Source of the DNA: Mytilus trossulus
Lineage: Eukaryota
Assembly: GCF_036588685.1 (NCBI RefSeq)
Contig: NC_086377.1
Location: 9,796,001-9,860,000 of the forward strand
DNA length: 64,000 nucleotides
Direction of reading: 5' to 3'
Numbering within the stretch: position 1 is the first letter of the stretch; each line of letters begins with the position of its first letter. The position numbers and the translations under genes are program-made. A model generated the notes under the pieces. The model did no database searches, had not been told where the DNA came from, and saw only the letters and a program-made list of their open reading frames with translations. Positions 1 through 51,420 of this stretch are shown piece by piece.

Positions 1-1088
1 CTCAATTACATTCGTGCAAAACAAAAAGCAAGTCTTAGTTTCATGTTATTTTCAGTATGTTTTTATCAACACAGGATATGTTTGATGTCAACTACGATAT
101 TTTTGGTCCACTACGAAACAGTTTTATCAACTACCAAACTCATCAAAATGTCCACTACGTTACATGAGTTGTACCTTCATATGTGAAGTACTGTCTATTA
201 TTTATCGATAAAAAGTGGTTCTCCAATTCAGAAAAAAGGTTATCGTTCTAGTCTGTAAAAGACATCAAAATGCAATAAGATGTGCGTTTAGGAGCAGTTT
301 CATAGTGGACACATGTTCCCTACGAAACAGTGCATAAATTATGACAACATATCATATTAAAGAGTATTTAAGATTGCTCATTTTATTAACAAACAGGTCT
401 TTAATAGAGGTATTCAAAATAACTTTAATAATTTTGTGTTAGGTCTAAAATTCACATTTTTATTGAAAAACGCCCAGATATGTCTAGATATATTTAGCAA
501 GTTATAATTACTTGATCGTAATTTATTCCTGTACAAATAAAAGATAAGAATTATCATCTGACTGTAAGAATACGCTTTAACAGTTTGATATTTTTGTGCC
601 TATCAATTTCCTTAAGATGTTCTTTGTATGCATTGGTGTTCATCATTTATATGTTGTCAATATGTTTTTTTCTAATAAAAAAATGTAAATATTTACGTAT
701 TTTAAATTCAGATTTGGTAAATAAATAATCAAATTTTAATTTCGTGGATAATTCTTATTCACGAAATACAGGAAATTAAATATGAAAAATTCTTCATTTA
801 CAGTAAGATTATATTTTTTATTTCAATTGTAATGTACATACTGATCAGCGATTTGTATAACACGCCTAAGTAAAAACTAAATGTAAGTAAAATGAGTAAG
901 TATTCAACCTAATCGGAAAGCTGTTCAACCACACCATAGGTTTGTATAAAAATCATAATTGTTTTACTAGTTCTATTTAAAAGACGCGTCATACATTATT
1001 AGCTGTCAATTGTGTATAGTGTAGGATTTTGTTGTCATTGTTTATTTGCCGTTTAATGTAAAGTACCTTGTAATGAATCATTGACAAC
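1..1088 (+). repeat. Upstream segment duplicated at about 30180-31334
   Basis: Colinear high similarity, including recurring CCACTACG/CGTAGTGG motifs. Confidence 0.85.
974..990 (+). promoter_or_regulatory. Candidate TATA-like core promoter (TATTTAAAAG)
   Basis: About 115 nt upstream of the ATG; identical TATTTAAAAGACGCGTC in copy 2 (~31219); ATTTAAATAC at a similar position in copies 3 and 4. Confidence 0.35.
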
Positions 1089-1855
1089 ATGGCTCAGGCA
1101 GCTTTTAAAACGTGTGAGATATGTGTTAGTGCCTCTGGATCTCATTACTGCTTAGAGTGTGAACAGTGCTTTTGTGACAATTGTAAAGGCTTTCATAAAC
1201 GGCAGAGAGGGACAAAGCATCACCAGTTCCAGTCTTCCTCTGATGTTATACCGGAAGTTAAATCAAAATGTAAAGACCACAATGAAGACATAAGTTTTGT
1301 ATGTAATACCTGTAACGTAGCGGTATGTAGCAGTTGTGTGACTGGCAGTCACTTAGGGCATGCCTTTTCTAAACTTCTCGACAGCATATCACAGCTGAAG
1401 GAAACGAATACAACAGACCTGCGTAGAAAAGTACTACAGTCAACCCAAAACATGAAGCAGATAGAAGAGGGTCTGAAGGCATTTGATGTGAAGGTGGAAG
1501 GAATAGTTAAAGCTATTACAGAAGAAGGTACAAGGATAAAGACCATGGTTGATAAATGTATCTTAGAGAAGATTGCATCGGTCAAGGATCAATCCAGGAA
1601 GGAAAGGGACAAATTAACAAAGCTGTTGGAAGATACTCAAAGTAATTTGAAGGCAGGACGCGACTTAGACAAGAAAATACATGAACTAAACAAAACACGA
1701 AACGATGGAAAATTGTTGCAATCTTTACAGAAGCTAACAGCCGACATTGTAAAGCTGACGGTAACGCTTAAACCTGAATTTCCGAACGTACAGTATACTG
1801 TTAAGTCCGCAACAGATAACGACGTTAAACAGTTGTTTGGTAAATACATAATCAG
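1089..1855 (+). CDS. Copy 1, exon 1: RING-less TRIM-like protein (B-box1, B-box2, coiled coil)
   Basis: ORF 1089..1859 with CEIC..HYCLECEQCFCDNCKGFH..H (B-box type 1), CKDH..FVCNTCNVAVCSSC..H..H (B-box type 2) and a long charged helical region. Good start context (ACAACATGG). Ends at phase-2 donor ATCAG|GTAATT, conserved in all 4 paralogues. Confidence 0.92.
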
Positions 1856-3560
1856 GTAATTATACTAAAAGTAACTAAGCATTTTGTAGTCGTAATACAT
1901 GTTTTAATATAACCCATAGTATCCTAATGAGAAAAAAATGCAAAAACACAATAATGTTGTTTTTTTCTAATATCAAATCATGTCTGGATATGATATGACA
2001 GACGAAGGAGAGATAATTCATGAAATACATGTTTGTGTTCATTACAAATGTATTGTTTAATATTATGGATTCAAAATGTGATCCAGTAGATAAATACGGC
2101 AGTGTGCATTTTAATTTGTATTGATCTCGACAATACGTTAACAAATGTACAAATGTAAAAATGCAAAAATACTTGCTTTCAAACCAGAACAGATATATTT
2201 GTTTTTCTCGTTATTCAAATGTGTTATTCTAATTGCATGCATTTTATGTAATATTATAAAAGAAATAAAGACAAAAGAAGTATACCGCTTTACAATAGTC
2301 ATAATAAATCGATTAAACCACATGTAGAATAAATCTGAACAAAACTGAGGGAAACACACATTAACTACAAGTGGAAAGCAACAGAACAACATAAACACTA
2401 TTCTGCTACAAAAACAAACGCCAGAAATACAAAGAAAATGACTTTTTGTTAACAACTGTCATACTCCTGACACTTGACAGAACATTTTATGATAAAATAA
2501 ACATAAAAATTTCTGTTTTTCTTTTATCAGTGAAATGCCTACACAACACACCATGAACAGAGAAATAGAATTGCCATCACCCAAGAGGTAAGGAATATAT
2601 TTGTATATTAAACAGTTTTTAAACTACGCTTTTGACAATGTTAACTTGTCATCAAATGTTTGAGTGAATTACACATTATCTTCTTACATACCTCACCATT
2701 TGACGTGGCAACGATTCTGATTAAGTTTGCATTTTATCCTGCAATTGGGTGTTCTACTATACAGATACAGCCTGCTTTGCTGTACTTGCATACTATACAG
2801 ATATCGCTTTAAAGCTCCACCCACTGCCAAACTGAGTATCGTATGAACCTGCGTGACATCAGACTGTTTATTGCAGTTGCATTCCAATGAAGTATTAATT
2901 GTGAATTAACGATAACTTTATAAATACGTTCTGTTTGTTTTCAAACATTTCTTTAGAGCAACAAGAATCCCACCAATGTTTTGATAACATACACTCATGA
3001 ACATCAGTCTTTTCTACGATGACTTCTATTTCAAAACTTGTGTATGATTTTGTAACAAAAACAGCCATGTCAATTTCAGCATGCATGTTTAGTGAATGTT
3101 TCAAATTGGACAAAGTAGTGTGATTTGTTTTTACTGTTGAAATTAGTTGTTATGCGAAACTAGATAATTATTCACCTAGAACGATGTATAGGTGTTGATC
3201 ATTCGATATTCTTAATTTGCAAACACGTCGTCAACTGAATTTGTGATCACTGTATCGTATGACTACACGGATCTCAAGAGGGATTTCAATTCAAAAATAA
3301 ATGCAAAACATGTGTTTGTGTCTTTCAAAACAAAAATAATAAACAGAATCGTTTGCAGGATAAAGACAATAACTGTTTAGTGTCTTTAAATATCAGCTGT
3401 ACTCGATTCGAAGCAGGTGTAGTAGCTCGCGAAAAGCTCGCATACAACTTGTTTCCTAGCATCGTACAAATACAGCTTACATTTAAAGACACAGTTATTG
3501 TCTATATATATTGTGTACACCAGTTAACCGTTTATTTTTATTTTCGATAAATCCATTAAA

Positions 3561-4010
3561 AAGTCTCTCTGGTTTATGCCGATCCTCTTTTTCCTACTAC
3601 GTACGTTAAACCACACTGACTCAAGCACGATAGCATTTAAGTTAATAAATCTTCTTATGATATGGAAACGCATACTAGTAGCATACATTATTATCAATAT
3701 TGTTTAGATTTTGTTGCATTTAATTTTCGTAAATATACTGCTTGTTAAAATGTGCCTGCTTCTCTAGTTGAAATATTTAAAACCTTTCTATGCTTAAAGA
3801 GTGTCTCTATGGTTTATGTATCTCCTCTTGTATCAACTACGTACGTTAGAACACACTGGCTCGAGCACGATTGCATTTAAGTACATAAATATTCTTATGA
3901 TATGGAAACGCAAACTAGTAGCAACAATTATTTTCAATAGTGTTTAGATTTTGTTAAAATGTCCCTGCTTTTCTAGTTGAAATATTCAGAACCTCTTTAA
4001 ACTTATACAA
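3561..4010. repeat. Two tandem ~240-bp units in intron 1 (also two units at ~62541-63000, one at ~33070-33280)
   Basis: Repeated tctctggtttatg...ctagttgaaatatt. Confidence 0.8.
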
Positions 4011-4922
4011 TATAACCAAAATATAAAAGTTATTCATCACAATTATCTATTGAGGCACGTATAATCAAAAGACGCCAAACTGTTTTACAACAACATAACA
4101 CAGTCATACTGTTTTGTTAAGTGTAGTTTGTCTTTTTATAAATAGTTTTTGTATGCAATATCTTTCCTCATATGTCGAGGAGTTCAACCACTTCAGCATT
4201 CACATTCACAATCGACTGTTGATGAAAGAGTAAACGACTTCAGCAGGTACATTCACAGTCGACTGTAGATTAGGTAGTAAAAGAATCCAGGAGTCACTTT
4301 CATAATCGACTTTTGTTGACGGGGTATATGATTTTATCAGCCACATTCCCGAAATGCATCTGGAATTAGTACCATGAGTTTCGATTGTATATAGTATACT
4401 TAAGAACTATCAGTCATTACTAAATGGTTGGAGTACTATGTAAACTCTTATATTGTTTTGGTGATGTCATCCAATTTTGTTTAAAGGAACGACAAACATC
4501 AATACGACCATTCCAGCTAAATAAAAGTCGAAGTTAATTAAAATGTTTTGTCAAAAATTAGACACACTACGTAACAACAACCCCCACTTACAACAAATGG
4601 TGAATTGTGATACTCTTCGTGGGTAAACAGTTTCTGTTCTACGCGGAACCATAGGAAACTTCTGTGAATTTAAGCAATATATCTTCCCGGAAAAAGAAAT
4701 GTATCTCAGTCTGGGTGTGAGCTGATTTTTCGTCTTTTATATTAATATTACAATTAATTCGAGATTCATTAACTTGGTTTATGACTCTTGTATATATTTC
4801 AAATGATTTTTGATATTTTTGCACTGTTTATGTGTGTACCAGTTAGTAATAGCTTGTTGGATTTTAATATCATCTTGAAATAGTGTAACTTTTAAGTCAA
4901 TCAATAGTGTTGCTCATTGTAG

Positions 4923-4988
4923 TGATTACAAACAGGATGTGATACCAAAGGAGCAGGGAAAATGCCTGTATAGATGTGAAAAGTGTGG
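4923..4988 (+). CDS. Copy 1, exon 2 (66 nt, phase 2-2): (S)DYKQDVIPKEQGKCLYRCEKC(G)
   Basis: ctcattgtag|TGATTAC...TGTGG|gtaagt; in frame with exon 1; homologous exon at 33884-33952. Confidence 0.85.
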
Positions 4989-5176
4989 GTAAGTTCATTA
5001 TAATTGTTTTTATGGACATGACACACAGTTGTATATCTATATCATGTGGCGTATCAAATGTATAATTGCCAAGTGTCAATGAAGTGCATAATAACTTGTT
5101 TTTTTTCTCGAAAAATGCAACTGTTGTCATTTGTTATTGGCTTACGCCACACATATATTTGCACTTTTTAAAAAAT

Positions 5177-5260
5177 CAATAAGAAACATTGATGAACAAA
5201 TCAATACGAAACATTGATGAACAAATCAATACGAAACATTGATGAACAAACCAATAAGAG
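5177..5260. repeat. 25-bp tandem repeat x3
   Basis: caatacgaaacattgatgaacaaat repeated. Confidence 0.85.
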
Positions 5261-6858
5261 TGATAAAGAGCAGCATTGACTTGTAAATAATTTACACATA
5301 TGTATGCAGGTAATGAGCAACATATATTCGCCTGCGTCAGCAGTGATGTAAATGGATTTATAATAAAAAGACTTGACGACACTCATATGTAATCACTCAT
5401 AGTGAGCATTTGGTGGTTTGATACTAAATCATTCACGGGTATTGTGCATGATATGCATAATATGGAGAAATTCATTTTTTATCAGTTAAGTAGTGGTCTG
5501 GAGCTAGCATGCTTGTCAGTAACTGCTAAATTTAATAGTCTATGTTAATATATGAATCATTGCCATTTTGCATAGGTTTTTAAATTACCTTTTCTGACTT
5601 CAGACTCTTTTAAACTGAGTTAATCGCACGAGGTTTGGCTAGACATAAAACCAGATTATACAAACCAATTGCTCTAAAAATGTCCTGTTTCAAGTCAGGA
5701 ATATTGAAATTGTTTTCAAATAGTTCGGTTCTATGTATGTTGCATTGACCTTTTTTTTATTGCAGTTCAGTGTTTCTGTTGTTCATTTGTGACTTCTTAT
5801 AATTGGTGTGTTTCTCTCGATTTTAGGTTTGTAACCGGGATTTGTTTTCTCTCAAAATATTTATGACGTTGAACTACGGTATACTACTGTGGCTGTTATT
5901 GGTACTATCTGGATAGCTGTGTGTTTTTTCTGTCGACATTGAACAGGTGTTTGCACCTGTCCAAATTCAGGAGTCTCTGAGTCTTTGTTAGTCTTTTTCA
6001 ATTTTAATTTCAGTTAACTTATGTGTTTTGGAGTTTGGTATTACGTCAATAAAACTGAGTTAGTTCACATTTTTTGTTTAGAGGCCAGTTAAAGCCCGCG
6101 TCTAAGCGAAGGATTATCTCGCTGTGTTTAAGACCCATAGATTGCCTTCGATTTTTCTCTGCATTTTGTTCGGGATGTTGTCTCTTTGACATATTCATAT
6201 TTCCATTCTCAATTTTACTTGGAAATCAATCTTAGAGGGAAACATATATGATGTTTGGACAATTGTCGAAAGGTCTTAAAATAGAATACACATTGGTACA
6301 CTAATGCAGTTTTGTTTGTTTGAAATTCCAGAAGAAAATTGAATAGCTCAACCAAATTCCTCAATAATAAACGACACAGAATATTTTAAATTGAAAAGCA
6401 TCTAAAACTAAACGACATTTGCCCTTGTTGACGGTTTTGTTTCAGATATTTTAAACGTTAAAAAGGCATAAGGTAGATGACGTATAGCTCTTAATGTAGA
6501 AAATATTGATTAATTAAGATACTTTTTACATATGAATTAGATTTAAGTTACTCAGTTTTGCTGAGTCAAGTCAAAATATTTCTTTTAAGACATTAATTGT
6601 ATAATGCAATAAAGTTAATGCCGCAAATGTTATCATAATAATGTAATGCTCAAACATAACGATTTTAAATGGTTATCTCACAATACAATTTAACTAAACA
6701 TGTACATTGTAAAGGTAATAAAATGAAGTAAACTTAACAAGATTTATTAGAACTATTTGTATTGCTTTTGAAATGCTATCTGGATAAACGGCAACACATC
6801 TATCAGTATTTTTGTTTAGAATGTGTAACTGACACACTTGATCTGTTTCATCTTTCAG

Positions 6859-6879
6859 AACGAAAGAGAGATCTGATAT
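6859..6879 (+). CDS. Copy 1, micro-exon 3 (21 nt): (G)TKERSD
   Basis: tttcatctttcag|AACGAAAGAGAGATCTGATAT|gtaagt; same-length homologue with near-identical flanks at 34773-34793. Confidence 0.82.
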
Positions 6880-6899
6880 GTAAGTATGATCTACGTCTA

Positions 6900-7520
6900 C
6901 TTTAGACCGTTTTACAGTGCTGTACAACTTTGTACATTTTTTCACATTCGATCTTTTATATCTGGGCGTCACTGGTGAGTCTTGTGTGGACAAGGCGCGT
7001 TTTTGGCGTATTGAATTTTAAACCTGATGCTTTTTGTTATCTATTAATCATGTTTTTTCTTTGTCTAATGTGTTCTATTTATTTGTATTGTAGTCCTGTA
7101 ATATTTTGTTGTCATTTCGATGTTACATTTAACTTTGCCATTAAAGTGCGAGGTTTGGCATGCCAAAAAAACAGGTTCAACCTGTACCAAGTCAGGAAGA
7201 TGGCCATTGTTATAGTATTGTTCGTGTCTGTGTGTGTTGCATTTTAACGTTGAGTCGTTTGTGTTTTCTCTTATTTTTGAGATATTGAGATAAGACGTGG
7301 CACGGTACTTGTCTATCCCAAATTCATGTATTTGGTTTTCATGTTATATTTGTCATTCTCGTGGTGTTTTGTCCGATGATTGGTCCATTTTGTGTGTGTA
7401 TTGCGTTTCAGTGTTGTGTCGTTGTTCTCCTCTTATATTTAATGCGTTTCCCTCGGTTTTAGTTTGTTACCCCGATTTTGTTTTTTGTCCATGGATTTAT
7501 GAGTTTTGAACAGCGGTATA
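6900..7520 (-). mobile_element. Dispersed non-autonomous repeat, family B (AAATAAAGGCAACAGTAGTATACCGCTGTTC end); other copies at ~5620-5900(-), ~22795-22930, ~36547-37010, ~37995-38320, ~44367-44705
   Basis: Multi-copy similarity within the window in both orientations; class not determined. Confidence 0.7.
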
Positions 7521-9446
7521 TTCATAGAAATATTTTTTTTTAAGAAGAATTTATTCATCATTACATATAAAATTTTGAGAATTGTTGGGTTTTTAATTTT
7601 AGTATTTCGTATAGCTTGTAAGCATGTATAGACAGTATAGACAGTTGAAAAATCTAGATAATCGCTGAATTAAAAGAGGATTTGTTTTATTTTTATTATG
7701 TTCACTGAGATCAAATAATATTTTTGGTTTGGGAAGTTCCCATGGAGGACATTTCCAAGTTTTAACTTGAGCAACACATTTTAAATCAAAAGAAGCTAAA
7801 TGTGGTTTTAAACCTATACCTAACGGAGGAACTTTATTTTCATGTTTTGCAAATCTATCTTCATAAATCGGATTAAAAACACAGCTGTAGGCAGGATTAT
7901 CTAAATGTAATTGTTATTTGGATGGAGAGTTGTCTCATTGGCACGCACACCCCATCTTCCTATATCTATTTGAATTCGAGCGTCACTGATGATTCTTTTG
8001 TAGACGAAACGTGCGTCTGGCGTATATACTACATTTAGTCCTGGTATCTATGATGAGTTTATTTAATCAACTGAATATGTTTTAGGATTACCATGCTTAC
8101 GATTTATTCCACTCATACAATTGTATGTTTGATGTTTTTACTGAGTTTGATAGTGTTCATCTCCTTTATTTTCTTATTTCAACCAGGAAACTAATAACTT
8201 CTCTGCGGATTAAATATAGCACATACATAATTGCATACAATTTCTAAAGGTATGGCTTCCCTTAAATAAGTTATCGAACGTCATCAGTTACCGACCATGT
8301 AATTGCCAGTCGAGATCGGTAAACACTTTCAGTAGTGGACGTTTGAAATGTATAACTACATACAATAATGGATATGTTCTATTTGTCAGTACATTTCTTC
8401 TATTTTTTCAAAATTAAGTTACAATAAATTTTGATGCGAACCATACGACAGATGCTGAGTTTTCTTTGTATTTTTATCAGAAGTTTTGATAGGCCTTTTT
8501 TTTGTTACTGTGTTGTATGTTTTAGTTGGTTTTTTTATGATTTTCGTATGCCCATCGAATTTTGTTTAAAATATCTATTAAGAAAATAAGCAATTAACCT
8601 CTATTTATATTGGAATAGAAAAAAAAGGTCCCATTACAGTAATTGTGTCTCTTATTTTGCTCACACGTGCACATTGTTGTCAATTCAATGGAATTATATG
8701 CCACTTTCACAAGGTTGAGAAGTTAAGCTAGTTATAAACAAAGTTTTATCCATAATTTCCTACATCAGGAAATTCATGTACGAAAAGATTGGCGAGAGAT
8801 ACTAGACTGACAATCAAACTCATGGATAGAAAATAAACTGAGAATGCCACGGCTAGGAATATAAAAAACGACAAAGACAAACAGAAAAATAATAGAACAC
8901 AAGACATAACACAGAAAACTAAAGACCAAGCAACACCAACTACACCAACAACTTGGTAAAAACGTATATAATATGTTTGCATACTATGTAATTGACAAAA
9001 GTGTTTTATATCTAGCTCCTTATAATTAAATCTTTTCGGCTAGTCATAATCAATAACAAGAAACAATCATTGTTTTTAATATAAAGATAACCACACACTA
9101 GTCAATAAAAGCAATTATGTTTATGTATTCATTTTGTGAAGTGGTTTGTACACATACATACCTCGTTTTACAAATCAAATATTCCTGAAAAAAAAATCGT
9201 TCATAAAGGCCATTCTGCGACCGATACTATTCATTTCTATTTGTCCACTTCATTTAAACTTTGGTTAAAAGTTTTCCATATCATATAGGTATATCAAAGG
9301 TTGCTCGAGCAAAAGAAAGAGGGAAGATATAGAAGTAACATTCCTATGTATACAATAGGTTATCACACTCCTGTGTATATAACATGTAAATACATTCATA
9401 TGTATGCAAAAGGTAAATATTTCAGGATGTACGCCTCCTACTCAGA

Positions 9447-10160
9447 AATCCAACTATAAACACATCAGACATAACTGTATATGTCTAATCCAACTATGAA
9501 CACCTCAGGCATACCTTAAAATGTCTAATCCAACTATGAACACCTCAGGCATACCTTAAAATGTCTAATCCAACTATGAACACCTCAGGCATACCTTAAA
9601 ATGTATAATCCAACTATGAACACCTCAGGCATAACTTGAAATGTCTAATTCCAACTATTAACATCTCAGGCATAATTTTAAATGTCTAATTCAACTATGA
9701 ACATCTCAGACATACCTTAAAATATCTAATCCAACTATAAACACCTGAGGCATACCTTAAAATGTCTAATTCTAACTATGTACATCTCAGGCATAATTTA
9801 AAATGTCTAATTTCAACTATGAACACCTCTGTCATAACTTAAAATGGTTTATGCAACTATGAACACCTCAGGCATACCTTAAAATGTCTAATCCAACTAT
9901 AAACACCTCATGCATACCTTAAAATGTTTAATTCGAACTATGAACACCTCAGGCATAAATTAAAATGTCTTATTCAACTATGAATACCTCAGGCATAACT
10001 TTAAATGTCAACTATAAACACCTCAGGCATATCTATAAGTGTCTAATTCCAACTATGAACACCTCATACGTAACTTTAAATGTTACATAGAACTATAAAC
10101 CCCTCAGACATAACTTAAATGTCTCATTCAGCTATAACAACATCAGGCATTATTTTAAAT
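9447..10160. repeat. 40-bp minisatellite, about 18 units
   Basis: Unit aatccaactatgaacacctcaggcataccttaaaatgtct, head to tail. Confidence 0.93.
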
Positions 10161-10364: not shown

Positions 10365-10373
10365 GCGGTACTG
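10365..10373 (+). CDS. Copy 1, micro-exon 4 (9 nt, GCGGTACTG)
   Basis: gttttatttttcag|GCGGTACTG|gtaagt followed by the conserved ACAGATAAGT motif; frame-preserving. Confidence 0.72.
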
Positions 10374-11048
10374 GTAAGTCTCAAGTAGCAAACAGATAAG
10401 TATAGCTCCCAATTATATATGTAGTTTATTATATATAAGATATTTATACAAAGGTGTAAAGTGAAACAATAATTATGCCATTTATAAGATGTATGATAGA
10501 CTAACGTTATGTCTACGAAAGAGGCGGACGATACCAACGAGACGTTTAAACTCATTAGTCAAATGGAAAGTGATAATGCATTGACAAAAAACTTTTCAGA
10601 CATAAAGTCAATTATCAGTATACAAAATACCTTATGTTATTTTATGCGCTGTTTTCTTGATTAACGTTCATTGAAGATGCCTAAAGCAGAAATGTTTAAA
10701 TCATATCACGTATAATAACCCAAACTGTTGAAGTTATGTCCATAGAGAACGTGCATCAATATGATTATACCGACATAACGTCAGCTTTTTCGAGGATGAT
10801 TAAACCACGATTTCTTTACATATTTTAAATGTATAAAGTGACAAATTATTCAAAAAGCACATTATTTTGTATTATTGATGGCTTTACTTTTTTTAATAAT
10901 CTGGCATAAAAAAACTGTTATCTTAAAATGTTCTCCTTTCTCGATACTACTTATTCAATTATTTCCATTTAATATGGGTGTAATTCATTGCTGAATTGTA
11001 TGTTGTATGCTGGATTTTATAATTATTCATTTGATTCTTTTTTTACAG

Positions 11049-11051
11049 CTC
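11049..11051 (+). CDS. Copy 1, micro-exon 5 (3 nt, CTC)
   Basis: ttctttttttacag|CTC|gtaagtgtcaagtagcaaacagataagt. Confidence 0.65.
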
Positions 11052-11722
11052 GTAAGTGTCAAGTAGCAAACAGATAAGTATAGCGTACAATTATATATGC
11101 AATTCACAATATAAGGTTGTCGATGCATTGATTGTAGTAGAATATATAAATAAAACAATAAACCTATCATTGACATAATATAATTATCTCAGACGCGCAT
11201 GCAGTCAATAAAAGGGTCGGCAAAAACCAATGCGACATTCAAACTCACTAGTCAAATATTAACTGACAAAGACATTACAAAAGCCTAAAATGACAAACAA
11301 CAGTATTCGAAGGAAAGAAAAGCGGGTGATTTCATGTGCAGTTTTCTAGATGTTACTGCATAGGAGACGTTAACAGCAGAGATGGTTAAATCCAATGACG
11401 TATAATAACCAATTACCAACACATTTAAAGAACTATATAAACATAGAGAACAAAACTAAAAATTGTTAAACCCAAGGTCAGCTTTCGTCGATGGTGTTTA
11501 AATCTAAGTTACTTTATACATTTATAAAGCGACACTTCAAAATCATATCATTATCTCATTTCAATGTATGAATTATGACCATACCAAATTATTAATCTGA
11601 TAGAACAAGCTGTCATCCCAACATGTTCTGCAATCCCTTTACTAATTATGACATTAATTCCATTCTAATTGTGATAACTCATTGCTAAATGGTGTTCTCT
11701 ATTTAAGATTACTTTTTTTCAG

Positions 11723-11725
11723 CCC
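11723..11725 (+). CDS. Copy 1, micro-exon 6 (3 nt, CCC)
   Basis: actttttttcag|CCC|gtaagtgtctagtaacaaacagataagt. Confidence 0.65.
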
Positions 11726-12954
11726 GTAAGTGTCTAGTAACAAACAGATAAGTATAGCATACACTCATCTATGCAATGTATTAAATAATACTCATATATG
11801 TATATACACAGGTGTTTTCAGAGTAGTATTATTAAACAATAAACATACATTTTAAAGAGAAAGGTAGTGGAGAAGATGTTTTGAAATTGGGTGGTATTTG
11901 TGTTTTTTTTCAAATAACCAATTTCTGAAGAAAAAAACATGTGTATTCTTCAATGACTATTGTCAGCTATTTACAGAAACCTGCATACATAAGCCAACGC
12001 TTCGAGTTTCAAAAACTATGTCTTGAATATTACAATCATGTCATACCATTTCACAGTTTGATTATACTATTCAAGACATAGTTTTAAAAGCTCAAAGCGT
12101 GTGCTTATACATTCAGGCTGGTGGAAACCTAAATGTGGTGGTTAAGTTTACAACATTGAAAGTTTTCCTAACGTCACACTATTGCGGGGTTTCATCCAGT
12201 TCATTAGTTTACTCTCAATTAATTGATTTTTCCCAAAAAGAATAGTGTGCTATGTTAAATGCATTTACTCCGGACTATGTAGCAACTACTCATCAATAGG
12301 TTATCGTTACCCGAACAAGTAAAAGCAATTGTGTATATATGTTCAACATCATATGAGTAAACGTATACTCGTACGGTTCGGCCATACGCGTACAGTCGGA
12401 CCGTATGAGTATTCGCGTATAGACCAGTACGAGCTGACCATTCATGTTATTAGATCATATGGTTTAAATTTAAACATATCACAATCATATCGACACACTA
12501 ATAATTTCCCAATTGAAAAAAATGATAATTGCAATTTAGGTTGTTATTTATCTTAAAATCTAACATAACTCAATGAAGAAAAAAAAATATTACACATATT
12601 CGTGTTGAATGAAGTACTTCCATTGTTTTATTGTTATATGATGATAAAAATGTCGGCAGTTTTATGTATTGTGCATTTTCATTATAATTTTGACTTAAAA
12701 AAAACACACACAAACACACTCAAGACATTGCATACGTCCGTAGCGCTTTGTTTTAATAACACTGACGTGTTATTGATAAGGCGGAATAATAAGACATACG
12801 TTGTTATGTTTTTACTACAGTGATTTGAATATAATTTACCAGTGGGCATAATAAGAAACAAGACACATACACCAAAATGGATGCAACCAACGTGTTATTT
12901 TATCCTCAAAAGAGAAAACAATACGGGTTGAAATTCCATTTACATTTTATTAAG

Positions 12955-13535: not shown

Positions 13536-13541
13536 TCCTCC
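13536..13541 (+). CDS. Copy 1, micro-exon 7 (6 nt, TCCTCC)
   Basis: long polypyrimidine tract + cag|TCCTCC|gtaagtgttatgtaccgaacagataagt; positional homologue of the 6-nt exon at 38575-38580. Confidence 0.72.
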
Positions 13542-15486
13542 GTAAGTGTTATGTACCGAACAGATAAGTATAAGGTTATAATGTTACAACATTATTAAAA
13601 TTAATGGACAACAGATAGTGAATGTTGTGTGTCGTGCTTTAAATAATGGGAAAATATTAAACTAGTTGTAAACAATTATTATTATGTAAAGGTTACATAA
13701 CCCATTCCTGAATAATAAGCAATGCGATATTTTGACTTTCGTCTTTAAAGAATAACATCATTTGGAAATGATTACACATATAGCACAAGTACAAGGTTTT
13801 GGGCATGCATGACGTCTGCACAACTTATATTCCATCCACATCAGACTAGTCATTTAAATTTTAAATATTAAATAGTTTGTAAAACTAGGGTCTTTATATT
13901 TACCTTTTGCACACTCTGTACTTGACTATAATTAACCAATTCTAATGCAGATAAGACGTGTTTCGGGTTTACTAAGCTGTTATACTAGTGTCGTGTATGA
14001 CTTATTACATCCACTTGTTTGATGCAAAAGTTTGTTATTATTTTTCTCCATTTCTACCTTTTATGATACCTTTATTTTAATATATAATCATCAATCACAG
14101 CGATTGAATATGCCTTCACACACAAAATGAGGGATCACATCGATAATTAAGCTTCTAAATAAATAAGAAGTTAGGTAGTCTTTCAAAGACTATCATCCAA
14201 ATCACCTTTGTCAAACTATTTAAACTATTGTATGATATTGTCTATTTTTTTTAAATAATACATGACAATGTCCCTAGTTTAATTCGCTACTTAAATGTCC
14301 ATGTATGATATATAACTGTCTTTGCGTACACCATGTTCGTCCATTACATGATGTAATACGAGAATAATATCATTGACAATTTCAACATATCAATTGTCTT
14401 AACTTTTTATCGGAAAGTGTCACTTACCCAACCATAAGTATTAATGATAGCTTTGAGCATTTATTGTTATATGAAAGATATGACAAAAGGCAGTTTGTTT
14501 AGAAAAAATATCAAGATGTGAATGTGTATTTGTTTGTTGGAATATTCAACTTGATAATTAATTTTAACATACGAAACAATGTTACTGGGAATTAATAAAA
14601 GTACTGGAAATCAAATATACGTGGATAAAATAACCAGATTCATTACGCCTAAGCTAAAAATTATTTAACAAGAAAAAAGAAATAAAAAAGAAATATTGTC
14701 AATGAGACAGCTTTCAATGACAAACGTTTTATCATAAACAGAGGTTTATAAATTGACCATACGGCTTTAAGTTATGGGCACTATAATACCGTCTTGTAAG
14801 ATAAACATATCAAATATGTAAAGTTTTGTAAAAGTGGAAACTATCTCTGATAAGTTCGATAGGTAGGTCCGAGCTATTTGTTTTAGCTAATATTAAGTAC
14901 TGCAGATAAAAGTTACGATCAATATGTTTCTTTTATTACTTGGCAGAACATATTATTAATTAGTCATACACAGACAGAGATCGTTAATCCTAAATATATT
15001 AGTATAAAAACTTGAACGAATATTGGCTTATTTTGATTTGTCAAGTTTAATTATAACAACAAAATTATTATTAAAATTTGAATACATTGAAAGCGCTTTT
15101 ATATATGACTGTTGTGCAATGGAATAATCGAAGGCAAACATAATCCAAACTATTTACTGATTTAAACCAAAACTAAGTGCAAGATCATACAACTTAACCA
15201 ACAAGACAAATGATTTGTAAAGTATATTAAACTTATTTATTTTTTTTAAAACTAAAAACACTGAAGGACATTTCGAAAGCTAAACATTTACTAAGATCTT
15301 ATATTAAGCAAAACATCAACCACACCGCTAACGAATTAGGTTTCAAAAAGGTAAATGCATTGCATTCAAATAGCATGACTAACCATTTATAACAATTCCA
15401 ATACACGTGTATTTTTGAAGAGCAAGTACTAGGATTATGATGCATTAATTAAATAAAAACAATTATTATTTACTTTATTTTTGCAG

Positions 15487-16989: not shown

Positions 16990-17600
16990 TGCCCAAAACA
17001 TGTTTTTTGGGGGCAAAAAAACAAGGCAATATTAACCAAAAATCGCTGAAAACTGAATTTGTTGTATATAATGAAATTATGAATAAAATTTTCAACTGAC
17101 ATGATTTTAAAATAGTTTAAGCTTCTTAATACATGCCATATCAGCGATTTTAAAAGGCATAAGACCAAGTTAAGCTATTTTTTTTGGTAAAAATGGGTGA
17201 TTTTGTCAAATAATCGCTGAAAACTGGATTTGTAGTATATAATGAAATTTAAAATAAAGTCTTTAAATGACATGATTTCAAATAGTTTCATCTTCTTAAA
17301 TCATGCAAAATTAGCGATTTAAAAGGCATAAGACCAAGTCAAGCCTGTTTTTGGGACAAAATGGTGATTTTGTAAAAAAAATCGCTGAAAACTGGATTTG
17401 TTGTATATAATAAGATTAAGGACAACATCTTCAAATGATATGATTTCAAATAGTCATAACTTTTTAAATCTTGCCATATCAGCGAATTAAAAGGCATTGG
17501 ACCCAAGTCAAGTCATTTATATGGTAAAAATTTGTGTTTTGTCAAAAAGTCGTTGAAAATCGGTATTTTCTAGTTGAAATGAAATTCTGAAACATATTTT
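16990..17600. repeat. ~170-bp tandem repeat (3-4 units), probably subterminal repeats of the adjacent transposon
   Basis: Repeated aatcgctgaaaactg...agcgattttaaaaggcataagaccaagt. Confidence 0.75.
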
Positions 17601-20970: not shown

Positions 20971-20985
20971 CTGTTCATGTGGAAG
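20971..20985 (+). CDS. Copy 1, micro-exon 8 (15 nt): CSCG knuckle
   Basis: ttttctcattttag|CTGTTCATGTGGAAG|gtaagtactgc; homologues at 39531 and 40337 keep C-x-C-G, with silent changes at phase-2 wobble positions. Confidence 0.8.
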
Positions 20986-23255: not shown

Positions 23256-23277
23256 TTTGATGAATAGAGTCCAGTAA
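23256..23277 (+). CDS. Copy 1, terminal coding exon B: (S)LMNRVQ*
   Basis: tttatttcttcag|TTTGATG...CAGTAA; the CAG TAA stop and following AGAGACA are conserved in the copy-2 terminal exon. Full spliced CDS is 912 nt (303 aa). Confidence 0.75.
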
Positions 23278-31334: not shown

Positions 31335-32101
31335 ATGGCTCAGGCAGCTTCTTAAACGTGTGATATTTGTGTAAATGCTTTTAGATCTCATTACTGCCTA
31401 GAATGTGAACAGTACTTTTGTGAAAATTGTAAAGGCTTTCATAAACGGCAGAGAGGGACAAAGCACCACAAGTTTCAGTCTTCCTCTGATGTTATACCGG
31501 AAGGGAAATCAAAATGTAAAGACCACAATGAAGACGTAAGTTTTGTATGTAATACCTGTAACGTAGCGGTATGTAGCAGTTGTGTGACTGGCAGTCACTT
31601 AGGGCATGCCTTTTCTAAACTTCTCGGCAGCATATCACAGCTAAAGGAGACGAATACAACAGACCTGCGTAGTAAGGTACATGAAGCAACCCAAAACATG
31701 AAGCAGATAGCAGAAGTTCTGACGGCATTTGATGGGAAGGTGGAAGGAATAGTCAAAGCTATTACAGAAGAAGGTACAAAGATAAAGACCATGGTTGATA
31801 AATGTATCTTAGAGAAGTTTGCATCGGTCAAGGATCAATCCAGGAAGGAAAGGGACAAATTAACCAAGCTATTGGAAGATACTCAAAGGGATTTGAAGGC
31901 AGGACGCGAATTAGACAAGAAAATACATGAACTCAACAAGACACGAAACGATGGAAAATTGTTGCAGTCTTTACAGAAGCTTACAGACGACATCGGAAAG
32001 CTGACGGTAAAGCCTATACCTGAATTTCCGAACGTACAGTATACTGCTAAGTCCGCAACAGATACCGATGTTGAACAGCTGTTTGGTTAATACATAATCA
32101 G
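31335..32101 (+). pseudogene. Copy 2, exon 1 of TRIM-like paralogue with two nonsense codons
   Basis: Colinear with copy 1 exon 1 (767 nt, no frameshift) but TAA at codon 7 (31353-31355) and at 32088-32090; donor ATCAG|GTACTT. Confidence 0.88.
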
Positions 32102-36439: not shown

Positions 36440-38610
36440 TCAGATTTTTGCTACAGTATTATGATTGCTATATGATTACCATAACCATCATAGAAACAAA
36501 ACACATACAGAAAAAGTTGATGCTATTTTGATTTGTATTGTCTCCAAATAAAGGCAACAGTAGTATACTGCTGTTCGAAATTTATAAATCGATAGAGAAA
36601 ATACAAATCCGGGTTACAAACTGAAGCTGAGTGAAACGTATCAAATATAGGAGAACTACGTTACAACAGAAATTCAACACCAAAATGTAACACATACAGA
36701 AACGAACTATAAAGTAACAATGGCCATTTTCTGACTTGGTACAAGGCATATAATGAAATAATAGTTGGTTAAACTGTTTTTGTTGCATGTCAAACCTCAC
36801 GCTTTAATGGTAATGTTAATAATAACATTAAAATGGCAACACTACACGACAGGGCTACAATTAAAAATCGAAGAAAGCATAGGACAGAGGAACAAACGAA
36901 TAATAGCCATCAAAAGTTACCAGGTTAAACATTTTATACGCCAGACGTGCGTTATGCCCTCACCATACTATGCTCAGATGAAAAACGTTTGAAAGCCAAA
37001 ACAAATACAAAGTACAAAAGAGATAAACGGCTTGAACAGTCATTTACATAATTTTGGGCAGATATTCATGTTTAACACTTGGTTTGTTATTTTTTATATG
37101 TAAGCATCGTTTAAATAGCAACAACATTCACACAGTTTCATCTAAGCAACACACAAGCAATTTAAAGCAATATGAAAAATTAGCAAATCGATAACTGATG
37201 TTTTGAGAAGATGTTTTATATGTTTTTGAAATTTTGAAGTTTTTCCTTATATTTCAAACTTTTTTTTTATATTTTTCAGTAAGTGTCAAGTAGCAAACAG
37301 ATAAGTATAGAAAACAATTATATATGCAATTTATAATATAACGATGGTTATGCAATGGCGTTAGCAGAGAAGTCATGTTAAATAATAAACATAACAGTAC
37401 CATTTTATGAAGATAAATACTTAAAAAGTGTTTTAAAATTTGTTAGTATATAACCATTATCTGTGTTTTGTTTTATTTTTAAACCCTTTTATAAAGATAA
37501 AAAGTAAAATGAAAGCATTTGTGTTCTTAAATAATAGCTCTCAGCTTTTCAAATATAAGAATAAATTGATTAGAGTCCTACCCTTTCGAATTTTACACTG
37601 AGTTCAGTATTTATGTGAATTTACTGTTTGTGAAGTGATAAGACATGATAAGATATTCGAGACTGAGTTTTTAAAGCTTGAGCCATGTGCTTTTTTTATA
37701 TGTACAGCCAGTTTTTGTATACATATGTTGAAAAGAATGTCGGCAGTTCTGTATGTTTTGCATTTCCATAATCATTCTGTCTTTCAAAAAAGGCAGAACA
37801 CTTTAAAAATTTCAAAACGCCCGACGCGCTTTTTTAGTTAAGGTAACGTAAACTTGGCGAAGCGGAACAAGTAAGACATAATTAGTTAAGATTTTTTTGC
37901 CACAGTTCTATGATTGCTATATGATTACCATATGCATTATTGAAACAAAACACATACAGAAAAAGTTGATGCTATTATGATTTGTATTGTCTCCACAGAA
38001 ACGAACTATAAAGTAACAATATCCATTTTACTGTCTTGTTACAAGGCATTTTATGAAATAATGGTGGGTTAAACCTGTTTTTGTGGAATATCAAACGTCC
38101 CGCTTTAATGGTAATGTTAACGATAACATTAAAATGACAACATTACACGACAGGGCTACAATAAATAAATCGAAGAAAGTATAGGACAGAGAAACAAACG
38201 AATAATAGCCATCAAAAGGTACAAGGTTAAAAAATGTATACGCCAGACGTACGTTACGTCCTCACAAAACTGTGTGCAGATGAAAAACAGTTAGAAAGCC
38301 AACACAAGTACAGAGTACAAAAGAGTAAGGCAGTTCGAACAGTAATTTTCCTTTTTTTGGGGAAGATATTCATTTTTACCACTTGTTTTTTTTTATATTT
38401 AAGCATCGTTTAAATAGCGTTTAAATAGCGACAGCATTCACACAGTTTCATCTAAGCAACAAACAAGCAATTTAAAGCAATATGAAAATTAGCAAATTGA
38501 TAAGATGTTTTATATGTATCTGAATTTTTTGAAGATTTTCCTTATACTTCAAACTTTTTTTTTATATTTTGTAGGTATAGGTGAGTGTTATGTACCACAC
38601 AGATAAGTCT
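36440..38610 (+). repeat. Tandem duplication (period ~1.3-1.45 kb) of a micro-exon cassette in copy 2
   Basis: ~36450-37280 matches ~37900-38575 (atgattgctatatgattacc... to the acceptor). Confidence 0.8.
38575..38580 (+). CDS. Copy 2, 6-nt micro-exon (GTATAG)
   Basis: tttttatattttgtag|GTATAG|gtgagtgttatgtaccacacagataagt; flanks homologous to 13536-13541. Confidence 0.65.
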   Translation, partial: V

Positions 38611-50349: not shown

Positions 50350-51420
50350 TATTTATCAAAATGTCATACTTATTGGCAAAATGTATTTTGGCGATTAAGG
50401 TTCGTCCGCCTAGATAAGCGACACCAAATAGCACCATGAATCTGAGATTGCGAATATTACTGAATGTTTAGGATCTGATACAAATTCTTATGTTGTACTG
50501 TTATACCACTTTCCCAGGTGAGGGGGATGGTTAGGATCCCGCTTACATGTTAAACCTCGACACATTATTTATGTTTGTGCCTGTCCCAGGTCAGGAGCGT
50601 GTAATTCAGTGGTTGTCGTTTGTTTATGTGTTACATATTTTTGTTTTCTCATTTTTTTTACATAAATAAGGCCGTCAGTTTTCTCGTTTGAATTATTTTA
50701 CATTGTGTTATCGGGGCCTTTTATAGCTGACTATGCGGTATGGGCCTTGCTCATTGTTGAAGGCCGTACGGTGACCTATAATTGTAATTGTCTGTGTCAT
50801 TTTGGTATTTTATTTATAGTTGTCTAATTGGCAATCATACCTCATCTTCTTTTTTATACTTACCGATATACAATTTTCTCAAAAATATATGCCAATGTAT
50901 ACGTTAATAATTCTTTTTTGAATGCTTGATTGATTTGTAAAATGCTTTATGCCGCATATGCACAAATAGGCTATAACGTGGCGAGAGCTTATTCCAAATT
51001 TTTTATTATAATTTAATGTTTATTTTAAAAATAGGACAGAAGGTCCTTCAATAAACTATATTTGAAGTCCAAAGCAAATTGTTTATTTACAAATAAAATT
51101 CAACACTCAGATGTTCACATAATAGTTTGTTACTTTATCTGTTATGTCTAACAATGCGTTGTCATATATCGTTATAACACACACCAGTCAATAACTCAAG
51201 TCAAACAATATTAGTATCTATAAATCAGAACATTGATCAATAATACAATAGGCATTTAAATGATTATTGTATGTAAATGTTAATTCCATATCCAAACTAT
51301 TATTAAGTTTGATGTTTTACAGCGTTAAATTTAAATACAAAGCGTACACATATATTCGTCATTGATTTATTTAGATAGTAGTGTTGACAATTGGTTCCTG
51401 TGTATTATACATCGAAGACG

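Follow-up and report, generated by a model that had tools for sequence, protein, structure and literature searches.

Gene content of the window

The window is a 64,000-bp stretch of Mytilus trossulus chromosome DNA (contig NC_086377.1, here C5, positions 9796001–9860000). It carries four tandem genes whose first exon encodes two B-boxes and a coiled coil, and which NCBI names "E3 ubiquitin-protein ligase TRIM71-like". The gene of interest here, gene A, lies on the forward strand, and we derive ten exons for it. Exon 1 (1089–1855) is 767 nt long, is open over 256 codons and ends in phase 2. It is followed by a 57-nt exon (2531–2587; phase 2-2), homologous to one used in the NCBI proteins which we designate P0003, P0088 (XP_063436118.1) and P0007; a 66-nt exon (4923–4988), homologous to the 66-nt exon of the mapped RefSeq models, which ends in a Cys-x2-Cys-Gly knuckle, the first of two; a 21-nt exon (6859–6879; phase 2-2), the homolog of which is used in P0003, P0088 and P0019; four micro-exon candidates of 9 nt (10365–10373), 3 nt (CTC, 11049–11051), 3 nt (CCC, 11723–11725) and 6 nt (TCCTCC, 13536–13541); a 15-nt exon (20971–20985) coding for the second knuckle (Cys-Ser-Cys-Gly), homologs of which are used in all four of the proteins mapped below; and the last exon, the start of which, up to the stop codon, occupies 23256–23277. 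Every internal exon is in phase 2 and a multiple of three in length, and the exons lying between the two knuckle exons encode the loop between the knuckles. All ten exons keep their frame and consensus splice sites.

The donor of exon 1 (1853–1859) reads AG|GTAA, so that retention of intron 1 ends the protein after one more residue (AGG TAA). This explains the many annotated proteins of 256–260 amino acids in this family, for example P0005 and P0078, the latter being the product of the window gene at 51391. Similarly, the 21-nt exon ends in AT followed by gtaagt (6878–6885), and read-through gives Met and then a stop. Many Mytilus models of the family end a residue or a few after this exon, some in Met directly after it (P0002, P0026) and others a few residues further on (P0010, P0015); they are probably truncated because the micro-exons were missed.

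Elsewhere in gene A, a minisatellite of 40–41-nt units in about 17 copies (9410–10119) lies in the intron just upstream of the 9-nt cassette, and three copies of a tandem repeat of about 170 nt (17018–17540) lie in the long intron. In paralog B of the same window, the exon-1 open frame (31584–32090) starts only at about residue 85 of the family consensus. This copy may be truncated or broken at its 5' end, although its tail exons (33885, 34773, 38575, 39530 and 40338) look intact.

Anatomy of the cassettes

The CTC triplet is preceded by a pyrimidine tract and CAG acceptor (11030–11048) and followed by the donor GTAAGT and a conserved intronic box ending in CAG-ATAAGT (11052–11084), the arrangement being ttttttacag|CTC|gtaagtgtcaagtagcaaacagataagtatagc. 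The CCC triplet is likewise preceded by a tract and CAG (11707–11722) and followed by GTAAGT and the box (11726–11758), reading tttttttcag|CCC|gtaagtgtctagtaacaaacagataagtatagc; its box is the variant GTCTAGTAAC, which in the class described below occurs only in a partial copy of the gene (C5:8169646) and in a sister gene (C5:10214665). The nearly identical 33-nt stretch after the donors is GTAAGTGTCAAGTAGCAAACAGATAAGTATAGC. The neighboring 9-nt unit (GCGGTACTG) belongs to the same cassette type (box GTAAGTCTCAAG...) as four other 9-nt cassettes in the cluster, and the 6-nt unit is followed by its box at 13542–13572. The 9-nt, CTC and CCC units lie in tandem cassettes of roughly 675 bp, spaced 678 and 674 bp apart, the cores of which are 73–82% alike with lower identity outside the cores.

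The pattern YYYYNYAG-NNN-GTAAGT matches exactly these two triplets in the 64 kb on both strands, against 0.01 expected from shuffled sequences, and the 33-nt box has four matches against none expected. The initial annotation, which had described two consecutive 3-nt exons beside a 9-nt exon in homologous cassettes with diverged flanks and retained splice signals, is therefore confirmed as to sequence. Read exon by exon, the first C of CTC completes a Cys codon (TG|C) and its TC starts a Ser codon, while the first C of CCC completes this Ser codon (TC|C) and its CC starts a Pro codon, such that each would add one residue.

One cassette of paralog B (37279–37311) keeps the full box but has no exon bases and no separate AG (tttttca|GTAAGT...), and is a dead or zero-length cassette.

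A class of codon-sized cassettes

To determine whether these units are unique, the 28-nt pattern GTRAGT-N-T-NNN-GTA-N-C-NN-ACAGATAAGT was searched against the genome. It occurs 112 times (105 on the forward strand), against none for the reversed control, and nearly all hits lie in a 2.3-Mb cluster on C5 between 8.14 and 10.47 Mb. Using a looser definition on the DNA around these hits, we counted 134 cassettes, of which 94 carry 3 exon bases (in 25 different triplets), 27 carry 6 and 5 carry 9, while eight possess no usable acceptor. None of the 126 cassettes with a usable acceptor has a length that is not a multiple of three. At least three length changes occurred within one cassette lineage, namely GCG to ATCGAT, CGG to CGGCGG and CTG to CTGGTACAT, all of them multiples of three.

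Certain members depart from this design. The 6-nt cassettes of the GGAATT/GGGCTT type (C5:8241119, 8271277, 8484409 and 8639798) carry a different box (gtaagtaccaaccat-ataagt), in which ATAAGT lies 15 nt rather than 22 nt after the donor G. Four identical units (C5:9914591, 9917732, 10137897 and 10141052) have the box preceded by cataagtcg and no acceptor, and are part of an array of about 3.1 kb that is repeated within two recently duplicated blocks.

RNAalifold analysis of 74 ungapped and of 53 MAFFT-aligned cassettes gave no consensus pairs, and single-sequence z-scores averaged -0.7. The box is therefore more likely to be a sequence motif than a hairpin.

Annotated proteins of paralogs

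Four NCBI proteins from this assembly were located in the genome and mapped exactly with a script that allows only AG/GT-flanked exons; an unrestricted mapping gave meaningless exons of 1–2 nt, and a too strict one gave no solutions. P0003 maps as exons of 782, 57, 66, 21, 3 (GTT), 3 (GCG), 3 (GCG), 3 (TTG), 6, 6 and 15 nt plus the last exon, and all 32 solutions share this micro-exon chain, in which four 3-nt exons follow one another. P0088 and P0019 each have a single solution, with four 3-nt and two 6-nt exons, and P0007 also uses several such exons. Loops of 8–11 residues spelled exactly, in genomic order, by consensus-flanked cassettes cannot be due to chance, and gene predictors are not known to place 3-nt exons without alignments. 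We therefore infer that transcripts containing them exist, though this rests on the NCBI models alone and not on the transcripts behind them. A search of the protein collection with the tail of P0003 returned only four M. trossulus proteins, none of them derived from transcript assemblies.

In the four mapped genes, every cassette with an intact ATAAGT box is used, provided that P0007 is read by the mapping which we judge best; here two ambiguous exons are assigned to the consensus cassettes at C5:8482029 (CGA) and 8484923 (CTT), a choice based on reasoning rather than on the mapper. In contrast, seven CGT cassettes (C5:8236536, 8238016, 8239069, 8268283, 8269336, 8482392 and 8637425) have a perfect CAG and GTAAGT but a decayed box (acagaaatgt, acagaaaaac), and all seven are skipped in these models. 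Since they belong to one lineage, this is suggestive rather than decisive.

Variation across cassettes

Across 71 distinct 3-nt cassettes the three exon positions have an entropy of 1.57–1.88 bits, higher than any other position from -30 to +47. AG and GTAAGT are invariant and most of the box is near zero, although the donor and ATAAGT were part of the search pattern; CAG is present in 93–100% of the unique 3-nt cassettes. Within lineages whose flanks differ by only 2–5%, exon diversity is 0.16–0.32. Used cassettes show at least 10 changes in 12 exon sites against 31 in 204 flank sites outside the search pattern, an excess of about 5-fold (P = 2e-5). All of these changes fall on exon bases 2 and 3, which are codon positions 1 and 2, and none on base 1. 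The skipped CGT lineage shows 0 changes in 3 exon sites against 18 in 51 flank sites, and across its 12 members the exon bases do not vary. This pattern is expected if the splicing signals are under purifying selection and the coded residue under diversifying selection, and is not expected of a neutral repeat.

Protein domains and predicted structure

Pfam analysis of paralogs revealed zf-B_box matches (E = 1e-12 to 4e-15) and a weak match to the TRIM coiled-coil model. There is no RING match, the N-terminal zinc module matching B-box-type and ZZ-type models only; these proteins thus share the B-box and coiled coil of TRIM proteins but not the N-terminal RING finger. No known domain was found in the tail. 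An AlphaFold model of P0088, built on 28 family members (mean pLDDT 75.7), has a long helix at residues 96–200 and folds the tail into short strands around the two Cys pairs, a small predicted beta mini-domain (pLDDT about 80). The micro-exon-coded residues (304–312) lie in the less confident connection between the Cys pairs (pLDDT 57).

Transcripts and relatives of gene A

For gene A itself, no RNA containing CTC or CCC was found. Its exact exon-1 protein is absent from the protein collection, the nearest hit being 91% identical, and no sequencing run contains more than 0.22 of its exon-1 words. The contigs of four runs, aligned at 90% likeness to positions 1000–6999 only, a stretch which says nothing about the micro-exons, differ by 5–8% from exon 1 and leave the 66-nt exon uncovered; they represent paralog transcripts. 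A loose end at 1855 shows a paralog's junction from exon 1 to the 57-nt exon. Assembled contigs show presence rather than absence, and these four runs may not be from this species.

The nearest full relative (C5:10199417) is a pseudogene with a stop in exon 1, whose homolog of the CTC cassette has lost the acceptor, and as such it has no protein model against which the CCC-type cassette could be compared. A 94–96% identical copy of the tail (C5:8168493–8183485) keeps CTC, CCC and TCCTCC, with unchanged exons, donors and boxes at all three cassettes and a few changes in the upstream tracts, but has no exon 1 within 11 kb, and its divergence is too low to show constraint. This copy has an intact extra 15-nt knuckle exon (ATGTCGCTGTGGAGG; C5:8172833–8172847), whereas at the same place (14880–14900) gene A has lost the exon and its donor. 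Gene A also reads Gly-Ser where its relatives read Gly-Gly.

Discussion

We propose, with moderate confidence, that CTC and CCC are two cassettes of a lineage-specific class of codon-sized exons. Each cassette comprises a T-rich tract and CAG, 3 (less often 6 or 9) exon bases, an invariant GTAAGT donor and, sixteen conserved bases further on, a second, non-cleavable donor-like site, CAG-ATAAGT. The cassettes lie as arrays in the long intron between the two Cys-knuckle exons of mussel B-box/coiled-coil genes, where each would add one residue to the loop without disturbing the frame; in gene A, CTC and CCC would turn Cys-Pro-Pro-Cys into Cys-Ser-Pro-Pro-Pro-Cys. Our analysis establishes the anatomy and its excess over chance, the family-wide restriction to multiples of three, the use of such exons in four NCBI protein models of paralogs and the excess variation in the exon bases. 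That these two cassettes are spliced into the mRNA of gene A is inferred, and is likely but unproven. The action of the ATAAGT box as a U1-type landing site or enhancer permitting recognition of an exon too short for ordinary exon definition, and the removal of the introns one after another, are inferred only.

Because the whole exon is variable, the donor cannot rely on exon bases, which fits the invariant GTAAGT. CAG-ATAAGT matches the U1 recognition consensus except at +1, and we infer that it recruits U1, or a factor with similar specificity, 22 nt downstream. This would let the acceptor be recognized without steric clash, the real donor then being used once the exon has been joined to its upstream neighbor. 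This step is inference only.

The interpretation in the initial annotation is partly supported. Its argument for real exons kept by selection holds for the class, but not by any cDNA evidence for CTC and CCC themselves. Its point that U2AF and U1 cannot easily occupy such an exon together is a textbook inference. Its statement that exons this small are near the lower limit known is fair for animals, but single 3-nt exons are known and 1-nt exons exist in plants (PMC8831610).

The strongest alternative, possible though doubtful, is that the cassettes are intact relics in a silent or decaying gene copy, which enter no functional mRNA today. The absence of a protein model and of matching RNA contigs, the pseudogenization of the sister gene with its dead CTC homolog, the orphan copy of the tail and the lost 15-nt exon are all consistent with this. 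Against it, exon 1 is open and all exons and splice sites are intact, the RNA evidence is confined to four assembled runs, and genes of this family are known to vary in presence between individuals. It is less likely that the cassettes are normally skipped, and included rarely or only in some tissues. A perfect AG-NNN-GTAAGT is evidently not sufficient for inclusion, as shown by the CGT cassettes, skipping of symmetric exons costs nothing in frame, and other NCBI models of the family lack whole exons (P0089, P0019 and P0062). However, CTC and CCC keep the full CAG-ATAAGT box which marks the used cassettes in the four mapped genes.

It is very unlikely that the class is an annotation artefact or a repeat with splice-like motifs by chance, with models forced through these sites without transcripts. 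Although inclusion is known from the XP_ models only, the exact spelling of four loops, the restriction to multiples of three, the invariant signals, the hypervariable exon bases and the chance expectation of 0.01 matches argue against this. Equally improbable is that the cassettes are ratchet points for stepwise removal of the 14-kb intron with three incidental bases, for, despite the acceptor followed almost at once by a strong donor as at Drosophila ratchet sites, the long host intron and the zero-length cassette of paralog B, the coded residues are present in NCBI proteins of paralogs, the exon bases change at amino-acid-changing positions far more than the flanks do, and the zero-length cassette cannot rebuild a donor after the preceding 21-nt exon, which ends in T.

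In the literature searched we found nothing on Mytilus micro-exons and nothing on runs of consecutive 3-nt exons. The micro-exon genes (MEGs) of Schistosoma mansoni also have arrays of very short symmetric exons, in multiples of three, separated by long introns, in gene families expanded by duplication, and there too exon skipping and fast evolution diversify a protein (10.1101/2023.06.21.545858; PMC4350168). MEG exons, however, are mostly 6–81 bp, commonly 15 bp, and make up most of a secreted protein, whereas here the typical exon is 3 nt, each exon carries a conserved intronic box, and the array codes for only one loop of a protein with B-boxes and no evident signal peptide, exon 1 alone providing 767 nt of a coding sequence of about 960 nt. 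Isolated conserved 3-nt exons with ordinary GT-AG introns occur in human MAP4K5 (PMC8632122), Drosophila hth (PMC7392893), human RPS24 (PMC12207440), and mouse Ncam and Drosophila TnT (cited in PMC8042270); they add or change one residue and are often alternative. Those are single exons per gene, RPS24 having one 3-nt exon beside exons of 18 and 22 nt, while here up to four follow one another and about a hundred share one cassette design in one gene cluster. Recursive splice sites of long Drosophila and vertebrate introns similarly juxtapose an acceptor with a strong GTAAGT donor, a nearby downstream donor-like site could help to define the unit, and stepwise removal of a long intron is plausible, but ratchet points leave nothing in the mRNA, whereas these cassettes have three bases between AG and GT and homologous cassettes contribute residues to annotated proteins. 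The SRRM4-dependent neuronal micro-exons (3–27 nt) of bilaterians are also very short, in multiples of three, modify surface loops of proteins and depend on intronic enhancers rather than on exon sequence. Their enhancer is a UGC-containing element just upstream of the acceptor, while here the conserved element lies downstream and resembles a 5' splice site with A at +1.

Perhaps mussels have evolved a dedicated splicing module that makes single-codon exons reliably spliceable, and use it as a kit of movable codons. In this tentative view, the decoy donor CAG-ATAAGT would be necessary for inclusion, and duplication, death, point change and skipping of cassettes would vary, residue by residue, the length and sequence of a zinc-knuckle loop across about a hundred B-box genes under diversifying selection, which would represent a recognition repertoire, possibly for immunity.

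Exons of 3 nt are usually treated as rare oddities, and most read aligners and annotation pipelines miss them. Here a single gene cluster offers about a hundred such cassettes built on one design, together with natural controls in the form of skipped cassettes with a decayed box and dead cassettes without an acceptor. This makes directly testable the old question of how the spliceosome recognizes an exon far too short to hold U2AF and U1 at once, and what intron sequence alone can achieve. The finding also shows a way to evolve a protein loop one codon at a time, and the variation pattern suggests selection for diversity in an expanded mussel gene family.
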